From positions 1,274,081 to 1,338,080 of the forward strand of contig OZ287696.1 in assembly GCA_965649825.1 (NCBI GenBank): a stretch of 64,000 nt of DNA. The letters run 5' to 3'. The notes below the pieces were generated by a model, which ran no database searches, was not told the origin of the DNA, and saw only the letters and a program-made list of their open reading frames with translations. The DNA is from Penicillus capitatus. Its lineage: Eukaryota; Plantae; Chlorophyta. Of this stretch, positions 4,224-44,257 are shown piece by piece; the stretch's first letter is position 1, and each line of letters begins with the position of its first letter. Position numbers and translations under genes: made by a program.

Positions 4224-5276
4224 TCGATTGGATCGGTGTTCGAGCAAAGACAATGCATCTCTAGCGTTTTCTGTTCGTATTCTTTTGGCCACTGAGCGAT
4301 GGACCACTCAGAGAAATCGTGCGAAGTCCTCGTTCTATCAATCTGCGAAAAAGAAAGAGGATTCAAAGATGATGTGTTCGATGGAAATGTGTAGAATGGT
4401 CTGCTTTCACGGAACAGCTTTTAGAGTGTCAGAGGTTATGTGCTGAATGCGTCACCATTCGTTTCAAGTGTCGTGATTGCTCGGCAATGAAAAGGACTTG
4501 TTCCGTCCGTGTCCTTTTCTACTTACCATCTGCAACTCAGAACACAGTTGCGCTTTTCATAAAGGGCAGCTCGATGTTGCTGCTCTGACTTTTCAAAAGT
4601 TGATGAGTATTTGCCGCATCCTCTTAGAATCATTTGAGCGTCGGAGTGTGCTCTACTTTCAAAAAGTTTCATCGATCGAGACACAAAGCGCGGTGTCGAC
4701 TCGAAGCCTCCTCTTTCACAACGTCGATCGGTCATCGAAACAGATAGACACCTCTGATCGCATCGCATCGCTTGTTGTTTTGCGATCTTGTATCGACATT
4801 CGCTCGAGGATTGGGCGCTTTCGATCGCATTGTAATTCTGAAGAAAATGCTCCGTCCGGCACAGAAGGTCGCCAATCGAAGTCATCTCCCGACGTCAAGA
4901 TGAAATGCGCGCATCACAATGCAACAGTTGTGGCGTCCTTCTCTTCACACGATGTCTGTGGTGTCATAGCGAGGACGACAGAAAGCCGTCAACATCATCC
5001 CACTGTGCACGGGATGCTTCATCTTGGCCAACAGGCGCTGCATGGATGTATCATGCATGGTCATGTGTGTTGAGTGAGATACAGGATCTCAGACACGTCG
5101 ATCACGATGGGGGTGCTATCATCGTACGAGATGCCGTTATTGCGTGCCACGTCGATGATTGCTCTGCGAACGCCCTTCGTCCGAACGCGAATCGACGCGG
5201 TTTCGCGTCGAGGAATCGCAGGGTACATCGTCTACTGAGACTGTAGAATTGCCACAAATGAGGTGGCCTAAAAAGC

Positions 5277-5387
5277 TTAACAGGTGTCTGTACGGTTGAC
5301 AAAAAGGAGTTGACCCAAACAGTTTAACAGGTGTCTGTACAGTTGACAAAAAGGAGTTGACCCAAACAGTTTAACAGGTGTCTGTAC
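5277..5387. repeat. 47-bp tandem repeat, about 2.4 copies
   Basis: ttaacaggtgtctgtac recurs at 5277, 5324 and 5371. It is bracketed by a duplicated aattgcca...tggcctaaa motif (~5248 and ~5389). Confidence 0.9.
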
Positions 5388-5515
5388 AATTGCCATGAAA
5401 AAATGGCCTAAACAAGAATCAATCGCTCTATTAAACCCAGAATGTACCACAACAACTAGAACGTATACGATCAGCTCGATAATAGGCTGTCTGCTGCGTG
5501 ATGTCAGATTATAGG

Positions 5516-5897
5516 CTGCTGGAGGCTTCAGTATTGGCTGCCCGCTGCTGGAGGCTTGGTTTTATGCTGCCCGCTGCTGGAGGCTTCATTATATGCTGCC
5601 CGGCTGCTGGAGGCTTGATTTCATGCTGTCTGCTGGAGGCTTCATTATATGCTGCCCGCTGCTGGAGGCTTGATTTCATGCTGTCTGCTGGAGGCTTCAT
5701 TATATGCTGCCCGCTGCTGGAGGCTTCATTATATGCTGCCCGCTGCTGGAGGCTTCATTATATGCTGCCCGCTGCTGGAGGCTTCATTATATGCTGCCCG
5801 CTGCTGGAGGCTTGATTTCATGCTGTCTGCTGGAGGCTTGATTATATGATGTCTGCTGCTAGAGAATTGATTATATGCTGCCCGCTGCTGGAGGCTT
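5516..5897. repeat. 29/26-bp minisatellite (core ctgctggaggctt), about 13-14 copies, with degenerate copies to ~6145
   Basis: Units ctgctggaggcttcattatatgctgcccg (29 nt) and ctgctggaggcttgatttcatgctgt (26 nt) are interleaved. Confidence 0.9.
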
Positions 5898-6169
5898 AGA
5901 CAAAAGGCTTCTGGAGCCTTCATCAAAGGCTGTCGTCTCAATCGTAGGCTGTCGGATGTAGAATCTCAGGCTGCTGGAGGCTTCTTGATAGGTCCTCCCT
6001 CGTCTTCATCAAAGGCTGCTGGAAGCTTCATGATAATCTGCTGTCTGCTGGAGGCTTGATAATCATCTGCTGTCTGCTGGAGGCTTGATAATCTGCTGTC
6101 TGCTGCTGTCAAATCAAAGGATATATGCTGCTGGAGGCTTCATTGTAGATAGTAGTCTTCATCCCCGCT

Positions 6170-8290
6170 GTCCGATGCCGGCTGTCGGCTGTCTTCGCCG
6201 TCTTTACCGCCGACTGTTGATCGCCAGCATCTTCACCGCCGGCTGTCGGCACATCGCCGACTTCATCGAAGGCTGTCCACGCAGGCTACTTCACACGGCA
6301 GTCGAATGCCGGCTTTCTCACCGCCTGCTAGCTTCGCTTCCGACTTCTTCGCCGCCGGCTGCTGGTTGCCCGCTGTCGTCTTCGTCGCAGGCTGTCTTTA
6401 TGGTCGTCTGTCGGGGCTGTCGTCTTCGTCGTCGCCGTCTGTGGATGCCGGTGGCCTCTTCATTACTGGCTGTCGCCGCCGCCGACTGTCTTGGCCGTCG
6501 GCAGTCTTGGCCTGTTGTCTTTATGGCCGGCAGTCTTGGGTGCCGGCTTTCTCACCGACTGCTGGCTTCTTCATCCGGCTGTCGGATGCCAGCTTACTCA
6601 CCGCCGGCTGTCGGCTGTCTTCGCCGGCTTTGCCGCTGACTGTTGATCACCAGCTTCTTCGCCGGCAGTCTGGGCCGGCTGTCAGATGCCGGCTATCGTC
6701 TTCGCCGCCGACAGTCTTCCTCTCCGGCTGTGGATGCCGGCCGTCTTCATGGCCGGCTGTGGGGGCCGGCTCTCAGGGCTGGCGGCTGTCGTCGCCGCCA
6801 GCTGTCTTCAGAGCCGGCTGTGGGGGCCGGCTCTCAAGGCCACCGGCTTCTTCGTTGCCGGCTTCATCGCCGCCGGCTGTGGATGCCGGCCGTCTGTCGG
6901 GGCCGGCGGCTTCTTCGTGGCCGGCTTCACCGCCGCCGGCTGTCTTCCTCTCTGGCTGTCTTGGCCGGCGGCTTCTTCATGGCCGGCTAATATGGCCGGC
7001 TTCACCGCCGCCGGCTGTCTTCCTCTCTGGCTGTCTTGGCCGGCGGCTTCTTCATGGCCGGCTAATATGGCCGGCTGTCTCGGGTGCCGGCTGTGAGATC
7101 CGGCTATAATGGTCGGCTGTGGATGCCGGCTGTCGGGGCCGTCTGTCTTACTCTCCGGCAGTCGTGGGGGCTGGCTGGCTGTCTCCGCGGGCAGTCTTAG
7201 CCGCCAGCTTTTGGGCCCGGCGGCTTCTTCATGGCCGGTTGTCGCCACCGGCTGTTGGGCCCGGCCGTCTTCATGGCCGGCTGTGGGTGCCGCGGGCAGT
7301 CTTGGCCGCCGGCTGTGGGGGCCGGCTGTCAGGGCCGGCTGTCAGGGCCGGCTGACGGATGCCGGCGGCTGTGGGGCCGGCTGTCTTCATAACCGGCCGT
7401 CTTCGCCGCCGGCTGTCTTGGCCGGCTGTCTTCAGAGCCGGCTGTGGGGGCCGGCGGCTTCTTCATGGCCGGTTGTCGCCACCGGCTGTTGGGCCCGGCC
7501 GTCTTCATGGCCGGCTGTGGGGGCCGCGGGCAGTCTTGGCCGCCAGCTGTGGGGGCCGGCTGTCTTCATGGCCGGCTGACGGATGCCGGCGGCTGTGGGG
7601 CCGGCTGTCTTCATGGCCGGCTGACGGATGCCGGCCGTCTTCATGGCCGGCCGGCTGTCGCCGCCGGCTGTCTTCAGAGCCGGATGTGGGGGCCGGCGGC
7701 TTCTTCATGGCCGGTTGTCGCCACCGGCTGTTGAGGCCGGCCGTCTTCATGGCCGGCCGGCTGTCGCCGCCGGCTGTCTTCAGAGCCGGCTGTGGGGGCC
7801 GGCGGCTTCTTCATGGCCGGTTGTCTCCACCGGCTGTTGGGCCCGGCCGTCTTCATGGCCGGCTGTGGGGGCCGCGGGCAGTCTTGGCCGCCAGCTGTGG
7901 GGGCCGGCTGTGGGGGCCGGCTGTGGGGGCCGCGGGCAGTCTTGGCCGCCAGCTGTGGGGGCCGGCTGTGAGGGCCGGCTGACGGATGCCGGCCGTCTTC
8001 ATGGCCGGCTTTCTTCAGAGCCCTCTGTGGGGGCCGGCCGTCTTCATAGCCGGCTGCGGGGGCCGGCTGCGGGGGCCGGCTGTTGGCGCCGGCGGTTTCT
8101 TCATGGCCGGCTGTCGCCACCGGCTGCGGGGGCCGGGGCTGTTGTGGCCGGCCGTCTTCATGGCCGGCTCTCTCGGGTGCCGGCTTCTCCATCCGGCTGT
8201 CATGGCCGGCTGTTTTCGTAGCCGGCTGTGGGGGCCGGCTGTCTTCAAAGCCGGCTGTCGGGGCCGGCCGTCTTCATGGCCGGCGTCTTG
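6170..8290. repeat. GC-rich complex satellite built from gccggc-containing modules
   Basis: Shuffled modules gccggctgtggg, gccggctgtctt, cttcatggccgg and ggttgtcgccacc, with longer duplicated blocks and very dense CCGG sites. Confidence 0.88.
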
Positions 8291-15356: not shown

Positions 15357-15569
15357 TCTTTGCACCAACTTCCTACAAGTGTGCTTCGCGAAAGGCATGT
15401 CCCGACATCCTGTGTTTTCCATTCTCGCTATCCTGATTCATTTTCTGCAATGCGAAAGACGGCGCATGCGTGACAAAAAGGAGTAGAGTGTAGTACCGCT
15501 GTGTAATCTGTCTGATTTCAGATTTCTCTCATTTCACACGCGGATTGCATGCGAACATTGACGAACGAC

Positions 15570-18500
15570 ATGGACCTCAAGACCAAACGTACATGGCGCA
15601 TCGCCATCGTCGCCATGCTTCTCTCAGTCGCCATTTCGAAACCCGAAGTGTCGAAGACGGAGCTCTGGGGAGACGGACTGCGCGTCGTCCATGCCGGCGA
15701 GATCTCGACCATCTATCTTCGGACGCGAGATCAAGAAGGTTTGACAAAGCGTGCGTCTGTTCCGGAAGCAGTGTGCAAACAGGCTCTCTTCTCCCGGTCG
15801 ATGTTTCTGAGATCGCCGCTTACTGCCTCAGTCTGCCAGACAAGCCGGCAGATTTCTGTGACAGTGGTCCCACGGTCATTGCCGATTCGCCGTGGCAAAT
15901 ACGCGTGGAATTCGTCGTGGGACGTTTCGAGGCGGTCGAGCGCGATCCGTCTATTATGCACCCCAATCCTTTGCCCGATGACTTTTTCTCAGCGACTGAA
16001 CATCGGATGCATATCACCGTCCTCGGAGATGCCGTCCCCGGAAGCCCATTTGCCCCACTCTTTCTTGGCGCTGACGAAATCGGACCAGCTAACTGCGAAT
16101 TCCACGCCTCGTATCCTGTCATCTTCGCCGGAGAAGGCGGAAGCGTCGGAGACCTCATTAAGATACGCGACAGATTCGGAAACAATATACGACCCGCGTC
16201 ACTCGTCGAACGCATTTCCGGAAATCTCACTCTTTTGACTCCGTATGACTGGACGCCCATAGAAGACAAGCCAGCTGAATTGACGCCGACTTGGCTTTTT
16301 ACTAACTGGTTTATCAGTATGCAAGTCGATTGTTACGTGGCTGGACAGTACCGCTTGAACATTGATTACGCTCAAGACAATGACACTTCCGTTCCGATTC
16401 CGATTAGGCTGAGCAACGGTTCGACGTTGCAACCAAGCGTGACAGTCGAATGTGCACCAGGCAAGCTTCACTCTATTTCGCTGGAGAGGCAGGGCGAAGC
16501 TGCGCTTGGATCCGAAGTGACTCTCGTTGCTCAGGCTTACGACAGTCAAGGAAATGCGGCATACTTCGGTCCTGCCGTGAGAAATGACACACTCGTGCCG
16601 ATCGAGGAACAAGATATTGATAATACCGAGGTCCTTATCGAACATGAGTCGTGCAGCTGTACGATGTTGAGCTCACTGGATGTGGAATTGATGACGGAAA
16701 GACCCGGATGCCTTTCTATACGCTTCTCCACAGAGACCGCCGGAAAGCACACCATCCGAATTCTCTATAGGAACGTCGACTACGTTCAGAATCCGTTTGC
16801 GGTCGAACTCCAGTTGCTTCAGCGAGTTATCGATCCGACAGCTTCTGTAGTCGATGCGAGTTTCCTTTTTGTCATTGACAATATAATTCATCTGTACGCT
16901 GGAGAGGATAAGTGGTTCTTCGTGTACTTGCGTGACAAAGATGACACGCCAACCGAAGGCAATCCGGAGGAACTGGTAGCGAAGCTCTTTCGACAAGACG
17001 TACCTTCGCAAGATCCAACGATACTGTCCAAACGGTCTATGGCCGGGCAGGGCATTGACGGAGTTTACGCCATCCAGATTAAGATGACAACTGCGGCGAT
17101 GTATAGGCTGGTCGTCACTTACCAGGGCATCGAGATTACAAATCCGTACAGCACAGTTATCATCTATCACTCTTTGGATGTCAGTCCTGAGCGGTCGTAC
17201 ATTGTGGGCTCTGCAATCGGCATCGAAATCGGACGGGAAGACGATCCACAGTACGATGAGCCAGAGCTCTATCGCCAGGTGGCCGGCCGAAACATGAGCT
17301 TAATCGTTATTGCAGTCGACCCGTATGGAAACGAACATGGCTCGACGAAGCCAGGATTCACAATGAACCAGGAGATCATTTCTGCTTCCTCGTGGATGCA
17401 GGTCTACGAATGGGGAGACGGAAAGACGCGATTCTATTTTTCTATCCAGACGTCTGGAAGATACCACCTAAGAACGGACCTCGGCACAACACTCAACTAT
17501 CAGGCATACTTAACAGTGTATCCAGCCGAGCCAGTTGTTTCCGAATGTCGCTTATTCGATATGCAGTCCATCGTCGCTGGCGAGGAGGGATATGGATTTC
17601 TGTACGCCGAGGATCGATTTAGAAACGTCTACGATGAACGATTCTTCGACCTGTTCACCAACAGCCTGTTTGATATCACTCTGACCCACACTACAGCAGC
17701 CTCGGAAGATGGTCCTCACTCAGTCGTCTTCACTACGTACAACACAGCAATGAACGCCATGCAGTTTCGTTACAATCCGACACGGGCGGGCGAGTACAAC
17801 GTAAGAGCGATGACTCAGAACTCGCCGATCCCAGGTGGCGGCGGCACAATTAACGTCTGGATTTCAAGCATTGTCAGTCCAGAGAGGTCGTTTATCGTTG
17901 GCTCGGCAATAGGTATTGAAATCGGACGGGAAGACGACCCACAGTACGATGAGCCAGAGCTCTATCGCCAGGTGGCTGGAACGAATATGAGCTTGATCGT
18001 TACGGCAGTCGACCCTTACGACAACGTCCACATTTCGTCGAAGCCAGGATTCACGATGAATCAGGTAATCCGCTCAGCGGCAGTATCGATGCAGGTCTAC
18101 GAATGGGGAGACGGAAAGACACGGTTCTATTTTTCTATTCAGACATCTGGAACCTACTACTTAAAAACGAAAGTCGGGACAGCGCTCAACTATGAGGCAT
18201 ACTTGGACGTGTCGCCAGCTGAGCCACTTGCTTCTAACTGTCGCGTATTCGATCTGCAGTTATCCGCTGGCGAGGAAAGACATGGATTTCTGCAAGTCCA
18301 GGATCGTTACAGAAACGTTTACGATGCACAGTTCAGTGACATGATAGATGTCACACAATTTGAGGTCGGTCTGGTCCATAGTACAGCAGTTTCGGTAGAC
18401 GACGTTCAAATGGTCGTCTTCAACGGATTCAATGCGCAACTGGACGCCGTGAAATTTAGCTACAGTCTGACGCAGACGGGAGAGTACATGATCGGTGCCT

Positions 18501-21500
18501 TCTTTCAGAATACTCCGATCCAAGGAAACGGCGATAGATTCGTCGTCGGGTTTTCCTCAGCTGTCAGTCCTGAGCGGTCGTACATTGTGGGCTCAGCAAC
18601 TGGCATCGAAATCGGTCGAGAAGACGATCCACAATACGCCAGGCCAGAGGACTTTCGACAGGTAGCCGGCCTAAACATGAGCTTAATCGTCACGGCAGTC
18701 GATCCTTACGGAAACGAACATACCTCGACGAAGCCAGGATTCACAATGAACCAGGAAATTGTTTCTGCCGCGGCATGGATGGAGGTTTATGAATGGGGAG
18801 ACGGAAAGACGCGATTCTACTTCTCGATCCACAGGTCTGGAACTTATTACTTGAGAACGGATTTTGGAACTGCGCTTAATTATGAGGCATACTTAGACGT
18901 ATCGCCAGCTGAGCCGCTTGCTTCCAACTGTCGCGTATATGATGTACACTCCGTCAACGCTGGTGAAGAAGGACACGGATTTCTGGAAGTCGAAGATCGT
19001 TTTGCGAATGTTTACGACGCACAGTTCAGAGACATGATCGACGTAACACAGTTTCATATCACTCTGACTCATAGCGAAGCAACGTCAGAAGATGACGCTC
19101 ATCCGGTCGTCTTCACTGAGTACAATACGCAACTCAACGCCATGCAGTTTAGCTACAGTCTGACGCAAGCAGGAGAGTACACGATCTCAGCCGACTATCA
19201 GAACTCTCCGATGCAAGGAAACGACGACACGTTTATCGTCTATCCTTCCATAGTTATCAGTCCTGAGCTGTCTTTCATCGTTGGCTCTGCAATCGGCATT
19301 GAAGTCGGACGGGAACATCATCCTCAGTACGCCAGGCCAGAGGACTTTCTTCAAATGGCCGGCCTTAACATGAGCTTAATCGTTACGGCAGTCGACCCTT
19401 ACGATAACGTCCACATCTCGTCGAAGCCTGGATTCACAATGAACCAGGAAATCACCTCTGCGGCGGCGTGGATGGAGGTCTACGAATGGGGAGACGGAAA
19501 GACGCGATTCTACTTTTCCATTCACAGGTCTGGAATGTACTATCTGAGAACGGACCTCGGCACAACGCTCAACTATCAGGCACACTTATTCGTGTCGCCG
19601 GCAGAGCCTCTTGCTTCTAACAGTCGGGTATTCGGCGTGCATTCTCTCGAGGCTGGCGAAGAAGGAGGTGGATTTCTGGAGGTCGAAGACCGTTTTGCCA
19701 ACGTCTATGATACAATGTTCAGAGACTTGATCGACGTCACGCAATTTCATATCACTCTGAACCCCATTGCAGCAGATTCGGAGGATAGCACTTACCCAGT
19801 CGTTTTCACAGAGTACAATACAGAACAAGACGCCATGCAGTTTCGCTATAGTCTGACGCAAGCAGGAGAATACACGATCGCAGCCGACTATCAGAACTCT
19901 TCGATGCAAGGAGACGGCGACACGTTTATCGTCTATCCTTCCTCAGTTGTCAGTCCCGAGAGGTCGTTTATCGTGGGCTCGGCAATTGGTATCGAAATCG
20001 GACGGGAAGACGACATACAGTACGCAAGACCAGAGGACTTCCGTCAGGTGGCCGGCCTTAACATGAGCTTGATTGTTACAGCAGTCGACCCTTACGATAA
20101 CGTCCACATTACGTCGAAGCCTGGATTCACAATGAATCAGGTGATCCGTTCAGCAGCGGCCTGGATGGAGGTCTATGAATGGGGAGACGGAAAGACGCGA
20201 TTCTATTTTTCCATTCACATATCTCGAACCTACTATCTAAAAACGAAAGTCGGAACAGCGCTCAATTATGAGGCATACTTAGAGGTATCACCGGCAGAAC
20301 CACTTGCTTCCAACTGTCGCGTGCTGGACGTACAATCCGTCAATGCTGGTGAAGATGGAGAAGGATTTCTGCAAGTTCAGGATCGTTTTGCGAATGTTTA
20401 CGATGCACAATTCAGAGACATGATCGACGTAACACAGTTTCATATCACTCTGACTCACAGCGAAGCAACGTCCGAAGATGACGCGCATCCGGTCGTCTTC
20501 ACCGAGTACAATACAGAACACGACGCTATGCGGTTTCGCTACAGTCTGACAAAGTCGGGAGAGTATACGATCACAGCCGACTATCAGAACTCTCCGATGC
20601 AAGGAGACGGCGACACGTTTATCGTGTGGCCTTCCTCAGTTGTTAGTCCAGAGAGGTCGTTTATCGTGGGCTCTGCCATCGGCATCGAGGTCGGACGGGA
20701 ACATCATCCTCAGTACGCAAGACCTGAGGACTTTCTCCAAATGGCCGGCCTTAACATGAGCTTAATCGTTACGGCAGTCGACCCTTACGATAACGTCCAC
20801 ATTTCGTCGAAGCCTGGATTCACAATGAATCAAGAAATCATTTCTGCAGCGGCGTGGATGGAGGTCTACGAATGGGGAGACGGAAAGACGCGATTCTACT
20901 TCTCTATCCACAGGTCTGGAATGTACTATCTGAGAACAGACCTCGGCACAACGCTCAACTATCAGGCACACTTATTCGTGTCGCCAGCAGAGCCTCTTGC
21001 TTCCAACAGTCGGGTATTCGGCGTGCAGTCTCTCGAGGCTGGCGAAGAAGGAGGTGGATTTCTGGAAGTTGAGGATCGTTTTGCCAACGTCTATGATACA
21101 ATGTTCAGAGACTTGATCGACGTCACGCAATTTCATATCACTCTGAACCCCAGCTCAAGAGACTTGGAAGATGACGCTCAGCCAGTCGTCTTCACCGAGT
21201 ATAATATGCAACTCGACGTCATGCAGTTTCGCTATAGTCTGACGCAAGCAGGAGAGTACACGATCGCAGCCGACTATCAGAACTCTCCAATGCAAGGAGA
21301 CGGCGATAAATTCGTCGTCTATCCTTCCTCAGTTGTCAGTCCCGAGAGGTCGTTTATCGTTGGCTCGGCAATTGGCGTTGAAATCGGACGGGAACAGTAC
21401 CTAAGGGCAGAGGATTATCGCCAGGTGGCTGGTCTAAATATGAGCTTCGTCATCACGGCAGTCGACCCTTACGGAAACGTCCACATCTCGTCGAAGCCTG

Positions 21501-23183
21501 GATTCACAATGAATCAGGAAATTGTTTCTGCCGCGGCATGGATGGAGGTTTATGAATGGGGAGACGGAAAGACGCGATTCTACTTCTCTATCCAGACGTC
21601 TGGAAGATACTATCTGAGAACGCATCTCGGAACTGCGCTCAATTATCACGCATACTTAGAGGTATCGCCGGCCGAGCCGCTTGCTTCCAACTGTCGCATT
21701 TTTGACGTACAATCCGTCAACGCTGGTGATGAAGGACACGGATTTCTGGAAGTCAAAGATCGTTTTGCGAATGTTTACGATGCACAATTCAGAGACATGA
21801 TTGATATCACACAGTTTCATCTCACTCTGATTCACACCGCAGCCAACTCCAACGATGGCGCTCAGCCGGTCGTCTTTACTGGCTACAATGCGGAACGTAG
21901 CGCCATGGAGTTTCACTTCAATCTGACGCAGTCTGGAAAATACAGAATCGCAGCCGTGTTCCAGAACTCGCCAATCCAGGGAAGCGGCGGCGCTTTAAGC
22001 ATACATGCATCACCCGTCAACTACAACCATACGCAAGCATCAGATGTTGTCAGCGACGTCGTCGCTGGCCACGGCATTGAAATCCGGATCGTAACGCGCG
22101 ATTTCTATGGAAATATCGCAACAGAAGAGGAAGATCTCGCACAACGAACTCGAATCAACATCACGCGTATCGCTACGACAGAACGCGAAGTAGTGAACCC
22201 GACGACACAGCATGAAGCTTCGAATGCAACAAAAGAACACGAAGTGGTGAACGCGACGTCACAGCACGAAGCAGTGAATGCAACAAAAGAACACGAAGCG
22301 GTGAACGCGACGTCACAGCATGAAGCTTCGAATGCAACAAAAGAACACGAAGCGGTGAACGCGACGTCACAGCATGAAGCTTCGAATGCAACAAAAGAAC
22401 ACGAAGCGGTGAACGCGACGACGTCGATTGTTGAGGTGTATCCTGGACTGCTAGCGGTCGAGGTGAACTTGACGACGGTTGGAAGCTATACTTTTCGTGT
22501 ACAGATCGACGGCAACGACATCTTATCTGGCAACTCAAGCTGCGTCGTGCATCCGGACGTATTCGATGCTGCGACGTCGGCGATTATGTTGGCGGCGAAT
22601 GTGCCTGTCGGAGAATGGAACGACATCATGCTTTTGCCGATGGATAGGTTCCGCAATGTGTTGGCTCCTCTCTCGAATCTCTCCATCTCCACAAACGCGA
22701 CGGACGTCGAGATTCGGCCGTTTGGATTGGCGGATGTCGGCGGCGGATGGATGAGGGCACAGTATTGGCTCGGCAGTGTCGGCAATTTCACTCTCGATGT
22801 ACAGCAGAATACCAAGACGATCTGGAATTTCTCCATCACCGCCGTTTCCAATACATCCACGAGTGAGGGCTGGGCACACACATCCATGATCCGTATATTT
22901 GACGCTCTTCTGTGCGATTTTAGGCTGGTATACTTTATCGAATACGTTATCCCTTATCAAGAAATGGCAGAACAGCGACAGGGCGCGCATCATCATGATC
23001 GTTTGCTTAGCAGTGGCACTCCTTGCTGGCTGCTGGATCTGCTTAAGGGACTCAAGTGACGACGACTCATCCTATGACGACTCAAGTGACGACGATTCGT
23101 CTTGTGATGACTCCTCAAGTGATGGTGCCGATCACTCTTCGTCGAATTCGACTCTTTCGATGGGAAGCCTATCGTTGCCATAA
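15570..23183 (+). CDS. Giant type-I membrane protein with filamin/Ig-like repeats (GEX2/FUS1-like architecture)
   Basis: Exon 1 (15570-15738) has a signal peptide (MDLKTKRTWRIAIVAMLLSVAIS) and LWGDGLRVVHAGEISTIYLRTRDQEG. A 44-nt phase-1 intron (15739-15782) joins it to the long ORF. A second intron (22863-22923) joins a final exon with a TM helix (IIMIVCLAVALLAGCWICL) and an Asp/Ser tail. Filamin-like motifs AG...D.YGN recur. Confidence 0.85.
17183..22015 (+). repeat. Seven tandem ~693-bp (231-aa) coding repeats, each two Ig/filamin-like domains
   Basis: The SPE(R/L)S motif starts at 17183, 17876, 18566, 19259, 19952, 20645 and 21338. YEWGDGKTRFYFSI is invariant in all seven copies. Confidence 0.93.
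22187..22423 (+). repeat. 27/54-bp coding repeat encoding an array of N-A-T sequons
   Basis: VNPTTQHEA SNATKEHEV VNATSQHEA VNATKEHEA VNATSQHEA SNATKEHEA VNATSQHEA SNATKEHEA VNATT. Confidence 0.92.
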
Positions 23184-37501: not shown

Positions 37502-39137
<1,636 letters not shown>

Positions 39138-41453: not shown

Positions 41454-41990
41454 AGAGAAAGGGAGTGTTTTGTTGTCGCGGGAGACGGATATTTGACTGT
41501 CAACAAATGTTCACTCTGCTTCATGATTAAATCGAATCTTGCCGAACCCGCTTAGCCGTGTCTCCTATCGCTCAATACCGAAAGGCTTTCAACTACAAAG
41601 GATTGTCCTACACTCTGAACGCAGAAGACATGAAACAGATATCTCTGTCATGATCTGGCGAGTACTCTAATAATAACTCACCGAATGGCAGAGTGAATTT
41701 TTTGCAAGGTCTGTTGCCCGCTAGGCACACAAGACGATATCCGCAGAACGAAGACGTCACTCACCTTTCGTGAAGACTCTGTTAACAGACCTCTTCCGGC
41801 GTCGAAGGAGATACAGTATTGCATCGTTTGCCTCGGACTGTACTGCCGTGCAAAAGGAGATATGTGGCATCCAAAGGACCTTCTTCTACACTAGGCGCAG
41901 TACGCACATGGCTTATGGACGGAAAGGCCCCAGTGCCTCGCAGCACAGCACAGCACGCAGAGAATTGTGATATTCTTGTCCACGCGACCT

Positions 41991-41996
41991 TATAAA
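41991..41996 (+). promoter_or_regulatory. TATA box upstream of the repeat-peptide precursor gene
   Basis: TATAAA ends 83 nt before the ATG at 42079. Confidence 0.5.
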
Positions 41997-42078
41997 TCCC
42001 GAGGCCATTTGTCGCTTTGCGTGTTTGTTGGTTTCTCAGATTTGTTTTGAATTCTCGAGGCGGTGTTGACCGAGCACT

Positions 42079-42595
42079 ATGGCAAGCGGCAAGCGTTTGT
42101 GTGTCTTCGTTCTTGTCTCAGTGGCTCTCGTTTTGTGCGCTGCTGGTCATGGTGAGCAGCTTTTCGCATCATCTAACGTCGCTAGGGTATGTTGTTTTGC
42201 GCAAAGGAGATCCCGGTGAAACGAAGCTCTCAAAGGACGAGACGGACTGTCTAGATGTATCCGACTGTGGGAGAAAGTCTGTCGTCGGAGTTTGGGACGC
42301 GGGCTGGAAAATGCCTTTTCAGAAGCGCAAGCTCGCAGCACCGCCGTTCCGACCACCACCACCATCACCAGGAGGACGCAAGCTCGCAGCACCGCCGTTC
42401 CGACCACCACCACCATCACCAGGAGGACGCAAGCTCGCAGCACCGCCGTTCCGACCACCACCACCATCACCAGGAGGACGCAGGCTCGCAGCACCGCCGT
42501 TCCGACCACCACCACCATCACCAGGAGGACGCAAGCTCGCGGAGGTTGATTTGCCGCACAGCGACGCCGGCAACGTCATTGCCAAATCGGCTTAA
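42079..42595 (+). CDS. Secreted multi-copy peptide precursor (prepropeptide), about 153 aa
   Basis: Exon 1 (42079-42151) encodes signal peptide MASGKRLCVFVLVSVALVLCAAGH. A GT-AG phase-1 intron (42152-42206) restores the frame into GDPGETK...DCGRK...FQKRK, 4x LAAPPFRPPPPSPGG(RK/RR), then LAEVDL...KSA*. An alternative last intron (42575-42627) would end at 42639. Confidence 0.8.
42326..42541 (+). repeat. 51-bp (17-aa) near-perfect coding tandem repeat, 4 copies plus a partial
   Basis: Copies start at 42326, 42377, 42428, 42479 and 42530. The only difference among the four full copies is aag to agg (Lys to Arg) in copy 4. Confidence 0.95.
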
Positions 42596-44257
42596 CGCGA
42601 CGCCGATGTGCGTCTCTGTTTCTACAGGACGGCGAATAAGTAAAGGTCATGAGGCGTTTAGTTTTTGGATTCTTTTGTCGAATGGTGAGCCCTGCTTTTA
42701 GTAAAAGACAGTGCCAGTTCACAAGTCGTAATCGAATGTGGTATACCAAACATCTGCCGTTCACCCTTTTTTGAAACCGAAGTCGAATCTTTCATGAAAT
42801 GTGTGTTCTCTTATGCTTATGTCTCGCTGATGCACAATTCAATGGTTTACTTACTCCTAAGCAACCATTCCTTCGATTGTTCGGACCTATCTTATCCAAA
42901 TCCACATGTGGCGTAGAATCAGTCGTATTCGCCATGCATGATACATTGTCGTTGATTAAGATCTGCACATTGTTCTGTTGTGCTACCTCCAACTTTAATG
43001 TTCCATCTTGACGTGAACTCTGCCGGCAACATCTCGACAATGATCGAGGAGACTGGCACTCTCTCGTCCGTGCTACACATCGTCGTCCACGGTCTTCTAA
43101 TTCGTGTCGTCAGACGACGGCTGTGCCGATCGCTCATCACCAAGACATAGATCGAGAACGTTCTAGACATGGCTTCCCTCGACCATGATTGGCTGATCCT
43201 GAAAACTGCTTTTGATCACCTCCACATCCACACTCCGACTGCAGTATTCTGTATACAAGGCATACATACTACAGAGAAAGCAGTCGTTGCAGTGATTCAG
43301 ACGTCGAAATGTCTGAAGATTCGGACAGTGTAGACACGATTCGATAGCCAAGGTGTTTACATGACTGTCTAGAACCGTTTGGGGCACTGTGCAATAGAAT
43401 GGCTTGAAACCGACTAAGATAGAGAAAAGTGAGATGACAGGCCGAGCGTCACTTTCCTAATGGAAACAAGAAAAGGGTAGAGCGTTTCGATGCGCATCTG
43501 TCCCGGGCACGACAACTGTTGCAGCTGCCCCAATCACACAGATCTCGGCGCGTTCAGCATACCAGAATCGATTTTTATCATATTCCGTCTGACAATCTAT
43601 ATGGCCCAAAGACTCCAAGACGAACTCGCTCAGAATTACACCATTATCGAGAGCAGTTGCAAGACATCTCCGTTTGGAATCCCTTGAAGACATCCGGCAG
43701 AAGGAATTGGCGATCTGGAGTCTCGTCGCATTCTTCTAGAGGTGAAGATACGATCGACATCGATGGTGTCTTCCTCGAAGACAAGAGAGTGCTAGATGAC
43801 GAGGTGTATGCTCTGTCGGCCCGAAAGTATGCAGAGCGAGAAACAGACCTGTAAGAGAACCGTGCCTTCTCTCCTTACGAACAGACATCGACGCGTTCAG
43901 CACAGACGACAAACCCTTTGTGCGCAGCAATTCTCGAAAGACGGATCATAAAACAGCGGTCGTTTTCGGAAAAGCCATTGACGAAGAGCAAACATTTTTC
44001 CGAACAGCGCGTTCGCGTCCGCAGATTTTTTTGCGACGACCATCGTGCATTACATGTCCCACAGATCCGTTTTCAGACTCGAACATATAGGAAGAAGATT
44101 CGCCCCGAAAGGAGTACTGCATAGGCAGAGAAGGGCGCCATCTTCATGTATACTCGATTCCAAACGGATGTACCAACACTTCCGGGTGCTACCCGTTAGC
44201 ACCACTCATCAAGCTGCTACTAGTAAGAACGGACCAAAACCAAAGAAAAGCTCAAAG

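Follow-up and report, generated by a model that had tools for sequence, protein, structure and literature searches.

The subject of this study is the gene at positions 42079–42595 (forward strand) of the window, that is, the whole 64,000-nt stretch of Penicillus capitatus contig OZ287696.1 that was analysed. The gene encodes a small protein in which a signal peptide and a pro-region are followed by four short tandem units and a C-terminal tail. By sequence comparison, it belongs to a lineage-restricted family of at least nine paralogues that matches no curated family. Our preferred reading, held at roughly even confidence, is that these paralogues constitute a new family of secreted, disordered polyprotein precursors that would be cut at (Gly)-Arg-[Lys/Arg]-Leu-[Ala/Ser] junctions. 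The general kind is already known from animals, fungi, diatoms, and plants, namely, secreted tandem-repeat precursors with conserved processing junctions.

The junction between successive segments was strictly conserved. Across 59 junctions in the nine genes, Arg was invariant (59/59), the next residue was Lys (48) or Arg (11), and Leu was again invariant (59/59). The basic pair was R-K or R-R and never K-R. The residue after Leu was Ala at 28 and Ser at 21 junctions, with a full set of A, S, T, L, Q, H, and R. Gly preceded Arg at 48 of the 59 junctions, including four of the five in the window gene, and the other 11 contained Glu, Arg, Lys, or Asn there; the window gene has one of these, KRKL, as its first junction. 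One further site, R-K-Val, was the sole departure, and its last position is still hydrophobic. At the DNA level, a codon check covered 49 junctions in six genes, where Leu was encoded by CTC, CTG, CTT, TTG, or TTA, Lys by AAG and AAA (20:20), and Arg by CGC, CGA, or CGT; Arg and Leu were never replaced. Because the codons varied only synonymously at Arg and Leu, the constraint on the junction (an example peptide is SPGGRKLAAPPF) acts on the protein and not on the DNA.

The segments lying between the junctions were unconstrained. Among 50 segment bodies, 37 were distinct and their compositions were unrelated, as illustrated by LAAPPFRPPPPSPGG in the window gene and by LAGSKHSG, LAGPPAYGGGGGG, LAAPPVYG, LSHHE, LLQNG, LAQAAAVAAVG, and LSVSGGG. 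The first five of these paralogue segments, among others, stand in place of the 14-mer that the original prediction had regarded as the ligand, and the 14-mer is not a conserved one. Segments of the paralogues were Gly-, Ser/His-, or Ala-rich, and those of the window copy were Pro-rich. In the alignment, the Gly run of one paralogue (L002) consisted of repeated GGA codons, while Tandem Repeats Finder detected an (ACC)n microsatellite encoding PPPPS inside each window unit. The repeat arrays appear to turn over fast by unit duplication and microsatellite slippage, which is why the products differ among paralogues. The hydroxyproline (Hyp) glycopeptide that had also been proposed found no support at the family level: PPPPSP is an (ACC)n product private to the window copy, and neither conserved Hyp-glycosylation modules of the Ser-Pro(3-5) type (such as SPPPP) nor Tyr cross-link motifs were found in the family sequences. 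Because the junction is kept so strictly in a disordered, secreted protein whose other segments are unconstrained, a protease recognition site is its simplest reading.

The gene model was obtained by listing all GT..AG pairs 3′ of the ATG at 42079. The donor at 42152 (GTGAGC) and the acceptor at 42206 brought the ATG frame into the repeat open reading frame (ORF) ending at 42595; without splicing, this frame hits a stop at 42219. Direct reading of the letters at 42079–42595 agreed with the earlier description, and the resulting 153-residue product is exactly the spliced protein described there. The features of the gene and its flanks, all on the forward strand, are as follows.

41600..42078 (+): conserved upstream region (promoter and 5′ untranslated region, UTR) of the duplicated unit; blastn homology to the paralogues begins at 41600
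41991–41997 (+): TATA box, TATAAAT, kept in the paralogues
42001–42019 (+): element GAGGCCATTTGTCGCTTTG, within the conserved upstream region
42079..42151 (+): exon 1, with the ATG, the signal peptide MASGKRLCVFVLVSVALVLCAAGH, and the first base of Gly25 (phase-1 boundary)
42152..42206 (+): 55-nt GT-AG intron, GTGAGC...pyrimidine-rich...AAAG, from the splice-pair listing; same donor and position in nine copies
42207..42325 (+): N-terminal pro-region GDPGETKLSKDETDCLDVSDCGRKSVVGVWDAGWKMPFQK at the beginning of exon 2, with 21 acidic-stretch residues first
42326–42334 (+): first R-K-L junction, preceding the repeat units
42332–42382, 42383–42433, 42434–42484, and 42485–42535 (+): four 51-nt units, each LAAPPFRPPPPSPGG followed by R-K (R-R in the third), from Tandem Repeats Finder and the unit sequences
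42536..42595 (+): C-terminal tail LAEVDLPHSDAGNVIAKSA (19 residues) and TAA stop
42596..43559 (+): conserved non-coding 3′ flank (3′UTR and beyond), duplicated with the gene, from identity to the paralogues

Tandem Repeats Finder gave a period of 51 nt with 4.2 copies and 98% matches at 42326–42540. The four units (42332–42535) differed only by an A>G change at 42483, which converts codon 42482–42484 from AAG to AGG in the third unit; this is the single Lys-to-Arg variant noted previously. The upstream TATA box was likewise correctly recognized, and an alignment of six loci showed hardly any variation in this TATA-like box or in the element that follows it. The signal peptide, called with a Kyte-Doolittle heuristic, has a basic n-region and a hydrophobic core (12-residue mean of 3.2), both features being kept in the six paralogues scored; a signal peptide is present in all nine copies. 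The AlphaFold2 model had a pTM of 0.13 and no secondary structure, and the protein is predicted to be intrinsically disordered. With four units behind a signal peptide, the multi-copy precursor layout originally described was also retained. The first ‘GRK’, which had been listed as a processing site (DCG-RK-SVV, residues 46–48, before SVVGVW), is probably not one: it has no following Leu, and subfamily B lacks both this GRK-S site (ALDRGHGSVVG) and the pro-region cysteines as conserved features. Also in the pro-region, the codons of a conserved W-D-A-G-W motif at 42287–42301 (TGGGACGCGGGCTGG; TGGGATGCAGGCTGG in the paralogue L001) hold near-junction DNA in another frame (G-R-R-L, GGACGCAGGCT), which could be a coincidence or a trace of the origin of the junction.

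The intron was in phase 1 in all nine copies, with lengths of 55, 54, 55, 55, 50, 50, 50, 51, and 51 nt. Exon 1 ended in CAT-G in eight copies and in CAC-G in L083, followed by GTGAGC in all nine, and the intron 3′ end consisted of a pyrimidine-rich tract and AAG in every copy. The lengths (50–55 nt) cover all three classes modulo 3, the spliced frame was open in 9/9, and reading through the intron gave a stop or a frame shift in five copies. Because splicing restores an open frame despite these length differences, the intron is well supported comparatively, in agreement with its predicted place between the signal peptide and the repeat exon. On this comparative evidence, the locus is a real, small nuclear gene of a green alga with one intron.

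The family was searched with a word-indexed method (5.8 billion proteins), a full HMMER profile (1.84 billion representatives), and a repeat-trimmed profile. The word-indexed search with the full-length protein gave at least three matches, and the fetched loci were turned into spliced models, yielding nine genes, i.e., the window gene and eight further copies. These paralogous precursors, whose existence had been suggested as a check, shared the same layout, which is therefore no chance arrangement, and all were found in two ENA assemblies, ERZ25074695 and ERZ26696514. Profile searching, against 1.84 and 5.8 billion proteins, revealed no relatives outside these two assemblies, and the large profile matches P0124, P0126, and P0128 were rejected as unrelated low-complexity proteins. 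Pfam gave no match at E ≤ 1, the only hit being a sub-threshold Pro-rich match in one paralogue; the earlier statement that no described family matches thus held. No further copies were present within the window.

L001 and L083 were located on the metagenome contig that matches the window, ctg340460 (about 292 and 464 kb, respectively, the window gene being near 247 kb). L002 lies on a contig of 13 kb, and L004 on another contig from the same sample as the window match. L003, L082, and the tandem pair L005a and L005b shared one contig from the second sample. The paralogue P0002 (L001 6001–6492; ctg340460 ~291.5–292.0 kb), which carries LAGSKHSG-type repeats, sits about 1–2 kb past the left edge of the window and about 44 kb from the window gene, in the opposite orientation to it. 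L001, L002, and L083 belong to a common segmental duplication of at least 3–7 kb that includes neighbouring 176-aa and ~196-aa ORFs, and these three loci give a hint of mosaics, either allelic or paralogous. The proteins ranged from 112 to 270 residues and contained 2–11 segments of 5–37 residues each, with the junction site occurring 3–12 times per protein. In some paralogues (L005 5001–5663 and 7127–7623, and L004 5001–5864), a further acidic module, EEGED-N-GIV-DVS-T..., is conserved between junctions. The C-terminal tails of L005a and L005b were frameshifted, and the family therefore includes decaying or diverging members.

Conservation was unevenly distributed along the copies. Among close paralogues, the promoter, 5′UTR, exon 1, intron, pro-region, tail, and 3′ flank were 80–99% identical, compared with about 52–58% for the repeat region, and the ratio of nonsynonymous to synonymous differences (pN/pS) of the pro-region was 0.35–0.57. 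Among distant paralogues, the signal-peptide exon (76–84%), tail (71–80%), and flanks (61–74%) exceeded the pro-region (51–62%). Overall, DNA identity was 34–58% in the repeat region versus 71–94% in the tail (the frameshifted L005a excepted) and 61–90% in the 200-nt flanks. The tail was kept in 7/9 copies with the consensus LAEV[DG][LF][PL]N[SN]DA. Of all the candidate products, this C-terminal 19-mer is the best conserved, a pattern shared with many precursors of plant peptides.

Each copy sits in a ~2-kb unit, the non-coding flanks of which (about 480 nt 5′ and about 0.4–1.0 kb 3′) were conserved at least as well as the coding sequence among dispersed paralogues. The 3′ flank of the window gene was 66–89% identical to those of the paralogues over about 0.4–1.0 kb, depending on the copy. 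In tblastx comparisons, the 3′ flank had no consistent reading frame indicative of a coding exon, and no structured RNA was found in the conserved flanks by Rfam matching. A mobile element was considered and set aside, as neither terminal inverted nor direct repeats were present. The conserved flanks may represent a long UTR, regulatory DNA, or an element, or may result from gene conversion.

Under the preferred reading of a cleaved polyprotein, each precursor would have four parts: first the signal peptide, then a pro-region that is weakly conserved and partly acidic, then 2–11 hypervariable short segments, and last a moderately conserved tail of ~19 residues. The junctions would serve as endoproteolytic sites in the secretory pathway. 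The most likely enzyme would be a subtilisin-family protease with the R-x-L-x specificity of site-1 protease (S1P)/SBT6.1, cutting after Ala/Ser, and a cut after the basic pair would be a less likely alternative; either cut would release several short peptides and the C-terminal tail, for which a role in signalling or defence may be envisaged. We favour R-x-L-x, or its combination with a Gly-dibasic site, with moderate confidence. R-x-L-x, with Arg at P4 and an aliphatic residue at P2 (R-x-[LVI]-x), explains the invariant Arg and Leu as well as the small residue that follows, and this motif, raised only in passing in the original prediction, fits 59/59 junctions better than a site for kexin- or prohormone convertase (PC)-type cleavage and PAM amidation does. 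The Gly-dibasic site that had been placed in the foreground was sustained in part: Gly does precede the pair at 48/59 junctions, but the 11 junctions without Gly, the absence of K-R, and the invariant Leu do not fit it.

The closest parallels in junction form come from land plants. R-x-L-x and R-x-x-L are the recognition motifs of plant S1P/SBT6.1 and SBT3.5 on secreted propeptides, such as RALF23 (RRIL), GLV1 (RRLR), and PROSCOOP12 with its site given as TGRRLM (PMC13082318), and RKLL and RRLL are listed as processing motifs of plant pectin methylesterase (PME) pro-regions (PMC4008260). The family has in common with these substrates (RALF23, GLV1/CLEL6, PROSCOOP12, and type-1 PMEs) the green lineage and a signal peptide; its R-[KR]-L-x junction has the same form as the plant RKLL, RRLL, and RRLM, and PROSCOOP12 likewise has Gly before Arg. 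However, Pfam and profile searches gave no sequence homology to RALF, RGF/GLV, SCOOP, or PME pro-regions, and plant S1P substrates have one or two sites, whereas the several sites in each member of this family are those of a polyprotein.

Polyprotein parallels are found further afield. In the diatom silaffin Sil1p, a signal peptide and an acidic N-terminal domain precede repeats that each close with an R-x-L-type motif; the protein is proteolytically processed with trimming of the motif (PMC4557024). The family matches silaffin Sil1p and silacidin in architecture (signal peptide, acidic stretch, and R-x-L-type unit ends), but only by analogy: it is chlorophyte rather than stramenopile, its units are not Lys/Ser-rich or phosphorylatable, and there is neither a link to silica nor homology. 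Fungal KEX2-processed repeat proteins (KEPs), defined by three or more near-identical repeats (PMC6339444), are highly diverse and confined to particular lineages, and for most of them no function is known (PMC6339444, PMC7329392). KEPs of the alpha-factor type resemble the family in being secreted with near-identical short repeats between basic sites, but their sites are K-R or R-R (often LxKR) with Arg at P1 and they are fungal, as opposed to R-K/R-R with an invariant Leu in an alga (KEP definition, PMC6339444). In Chlamydomonas, PAM and amidated secreted peptides are documented, as the original prediction had stated, and the Cre03.g204500/GATI-amide prepropeptides have a signal peptide, are Pro-rich with paired basics and Gly-basic sites, and form a clustered multigene family (PMC6919629). 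They differ from the short tandem-repeat polyproteins described here in being large (94 kDa) and amidated at the C-terminus, and no homology was detected. HypSys, multi-CLE, and extensin-type hydroxyproline-rich glycoproteins (HRGPs) are like the window copy in carrying multi-copy Pro-rich peptides in a secreted precursor and in PPPPSP; in contrast, the Pro-rich body here is private to the window paralogue and derived from (ACC)n, and no SPPPP, Tyr, or CLE motif is present.

Several observations weigh against processing by an S1P-type protease. The Gly at −1 (81%) is not accounted for by S1P specificity. Neither the JGI collections nor any of the transcriptome-derived protein sets searched yielded a family member; a peptide-pattern scan of the JGI metagenomes gave no relative or cDNA, and the 74 loci obtained from a triple-motif DNA scan of the same metagenomes were all unrelated tandem repeats on inspection. 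Some predicted products have only 5 residues (LSHHE and LLQNG), which is unusual for bioactive peptides. Selection outside the junction is weak: the signal peptide had a pN/pS of about 1.1 and the tail one of 0.64 (pooled, five copies). Finally, a conserved junction between unconstrained bodies could mean that the motif is the functional unit of an uncleaved protein.

This last possibility, in which a basic, disordered repeat protein would stay uncleaved in the wall, the mucilage, or an adhesive layer, with G-R-K-L as the working unit and the segments as spacers, deserves to be kept in mind as a minority reading. G-R-K-L might, for example, bind sulfated or acidic polysaccharides or mineral, or be a site of cross-linking or modification. 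The confinement of constraint to the motif, with spacers drifting by microsatellite expansion, would be expected of such a protein, as would the predicted disorder, and the Pro-, Gly-, and Ser/His-rich spacers, with PPPPSP in the window copy, resemble structural low-complexity proteins. However, extensin hallmarks (repeated SPPPP and Tyr cross-link motifs) and a Pfam HRGP match were lacking, and 112–270 residues is small for a matrix protein. The strict R-[KR]-L-[small] with its invariant Leu is typical of protease subsites rather than of charge binding, and the conserved signal peptide, pro-region, and C-terminal tail correspond to a precursor layout.

An animal-type prohormone, as in the original prediction, is doubtful. 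Here, a kexin- or PC-like enzyme would cut after the basic pair, a carboxypeptidase would trim the ends, and PAM would generate four LAAPPFRPPPPSPG-NH2 peptides, possibly Hyp-arabinosylated, acting as a hormone or pheromone. Chlorophyte algae do possess PAM and convertases of the subtilisin-like type, and they secrete amidated peptides (PMC6919629; PMC6529398). The Gly before the pair, seen family-wide (48/59) and at 4/5 junctions in the window gene, together with the signal peptide and predicted disorder, would suit such a precursor. Kexin, furin, and PC1/3 prefer Arg at P1, but in this family P1 would be Lys at 81% of the junctions (48/59), with K-R never occurring. The pathway also does not require an invariant Leu at P1′, 11 junctions have Glu, Arg, Lys, or Asn in place of Gly, the peptide body and the would-be amidated end vary among paralogues, and PPPPSP is a microsatellite product seen in this copy only. 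Our literature search found nothing on PAM in Ulvophyceae. An amidated, Hyp-glycosylated 14-mer hormone is weakly supported.

It is unlikely, though compatible with the same processing as in the preferred reading, that the peptides are a hypervariable arsenal for defence, or for gamete or self/non-self recognition. Parallels exist in the precursors of frog-skin peptides and cone-snail toxins and in the insect multi-peptide apidaecin precursors. As in an arsenal, the promoter, signal peptide, and UTRs were conserved while the products were hypervariable, the multigene family comprised tandem and dispersed copies, and an acidic propiece lay beside basic or Pro/Arg-rich units. On the other hand, many of the predicted peptides are very short and nearly uncharged without the basic pair, no likeness to known antimicrobial peptide families was found, and neutral repeat turnover explains the hypervariability equally well. 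A non-functional origin, i.e., a dispersed ~2-kb repeat or mobile element with a chance open frame, or decaying pseudogenes, is highly improbable: the copying of the whole unit (about 480 nt 5′ and about 0.4–1.0 kb 3′) with flanks conserved at least as well as the coding part, the two copies with frameshifted tails, and the signal-peptide pN/pS near 1 would fit it, but Pfam scans of the loci revealed no transposase and no terminal repeats were present, the ORF stayed open through differing unit lengths in nine copies with the spliced frame kept despite intron length changes, the junction Arg and Leu were invariant (59/59) with only synonymous changes at the 49 checked, and the hydrophobic signal peptide was retained.

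The window itself is eukaryotic, gene-dense, and about 51% G+C, with genes for Mon2, Es2, a protein kinase, an Omp85-family protein, a HAD hydrolase, and SRP54. Neither the window nor the about 80 kb of related loci that were read contains a protease gene. The best named match of the SRP54 ORF was Ostreobium quekettii (76%), with other green algae and land plants at about 60–71%. This places the window in green algae, as expected from the original assignment to an alga; a diatom origin, an idea that had come from the RXL motif and 50% GC, was therefore dropped. Exact look-up of the neighbouring HAD ORF gave no record. The SRP54 gene (37547–39137) contains two short introns, at 38600–38655 (56 nt, donor GTCCCT) and 38854–38900 (47 nt). 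Their positions follow from comparison with the SRP54 of a related alga, a transcript-type orthologue that lacks introns (JGI 3300008030, 92% identical). Because these introns measure 56 and 47 nt, a 55-nt intron is normal for this genome.

The window was identical over 3.07 kb to the ENA metagenome contig ERZ25074695:ctg340460_36x_l. Near its left end, the two were 97.5% identical with a 734-nt offset, and there is therefore a length difference between window positions 4821 and 36547. Its likely site is the block at 5241–8284, a GC-rich (67%) array of nested tandem repeats with periods of 29, 45, 58, 106, and 234 nt, in which T strongly exceeds A and each strand has ORFs in several frames. 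Another observation concerns 15545–23059, a single, apparently intronless open frame of 2504 aa with weak filamin-repeat and His-rich matches and a 54-nt tandem repeat at 22171–22422.

There are two practical lessons. When ORFs on metagenome contigs are called in the prokaryote style, genes of this type are missed or truncated, because the 50–55-nt intron splits the signal peptide from the body, and Pro/Gly repeats swamp word-indexed searches. Signalling by secreted peptides is familiar from land plants, animals, and fungi. To our knowledge, those of green algae rest almost entirely on a few Chlamydomonas examples. In the present family, the candidate processing site R-[KR]-L, which is the motif of plant site-1-type subtilases, is clean, occurs repeatedly, and is under strong constraint. 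If its members were uncleaved wall components, they would represent an ordinary orphan low-complexity family. If cleavage is demonstrated, RxLx-dependent propeptide maturation would predate the chlorophyte–streptophyte split, and the family would be the first algal polyprotein of alpha-factor or silaffin style. We tentatively raise, as a lesser prospect, a more specific scheme for siphonous-type or Ostreobium-related green algae, in which the precursors would form a multi-peptide class not known before and a plant-like subtilase of S1P type would cut at tandem G-R-K-L-A junctions; this cut, with the exposed Gly then possibly amidated by PAM, would release batteries of short, secreted, fast-diversifying peptides and a conserved C-terminal peptide for cell–cell signalling or defence. 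Such an S1P and PAM system, if true, would join the plant RxLx propeptide, animal and Chlamydomonas amidation, and fungal and diatom polyprotein strategies in one family.

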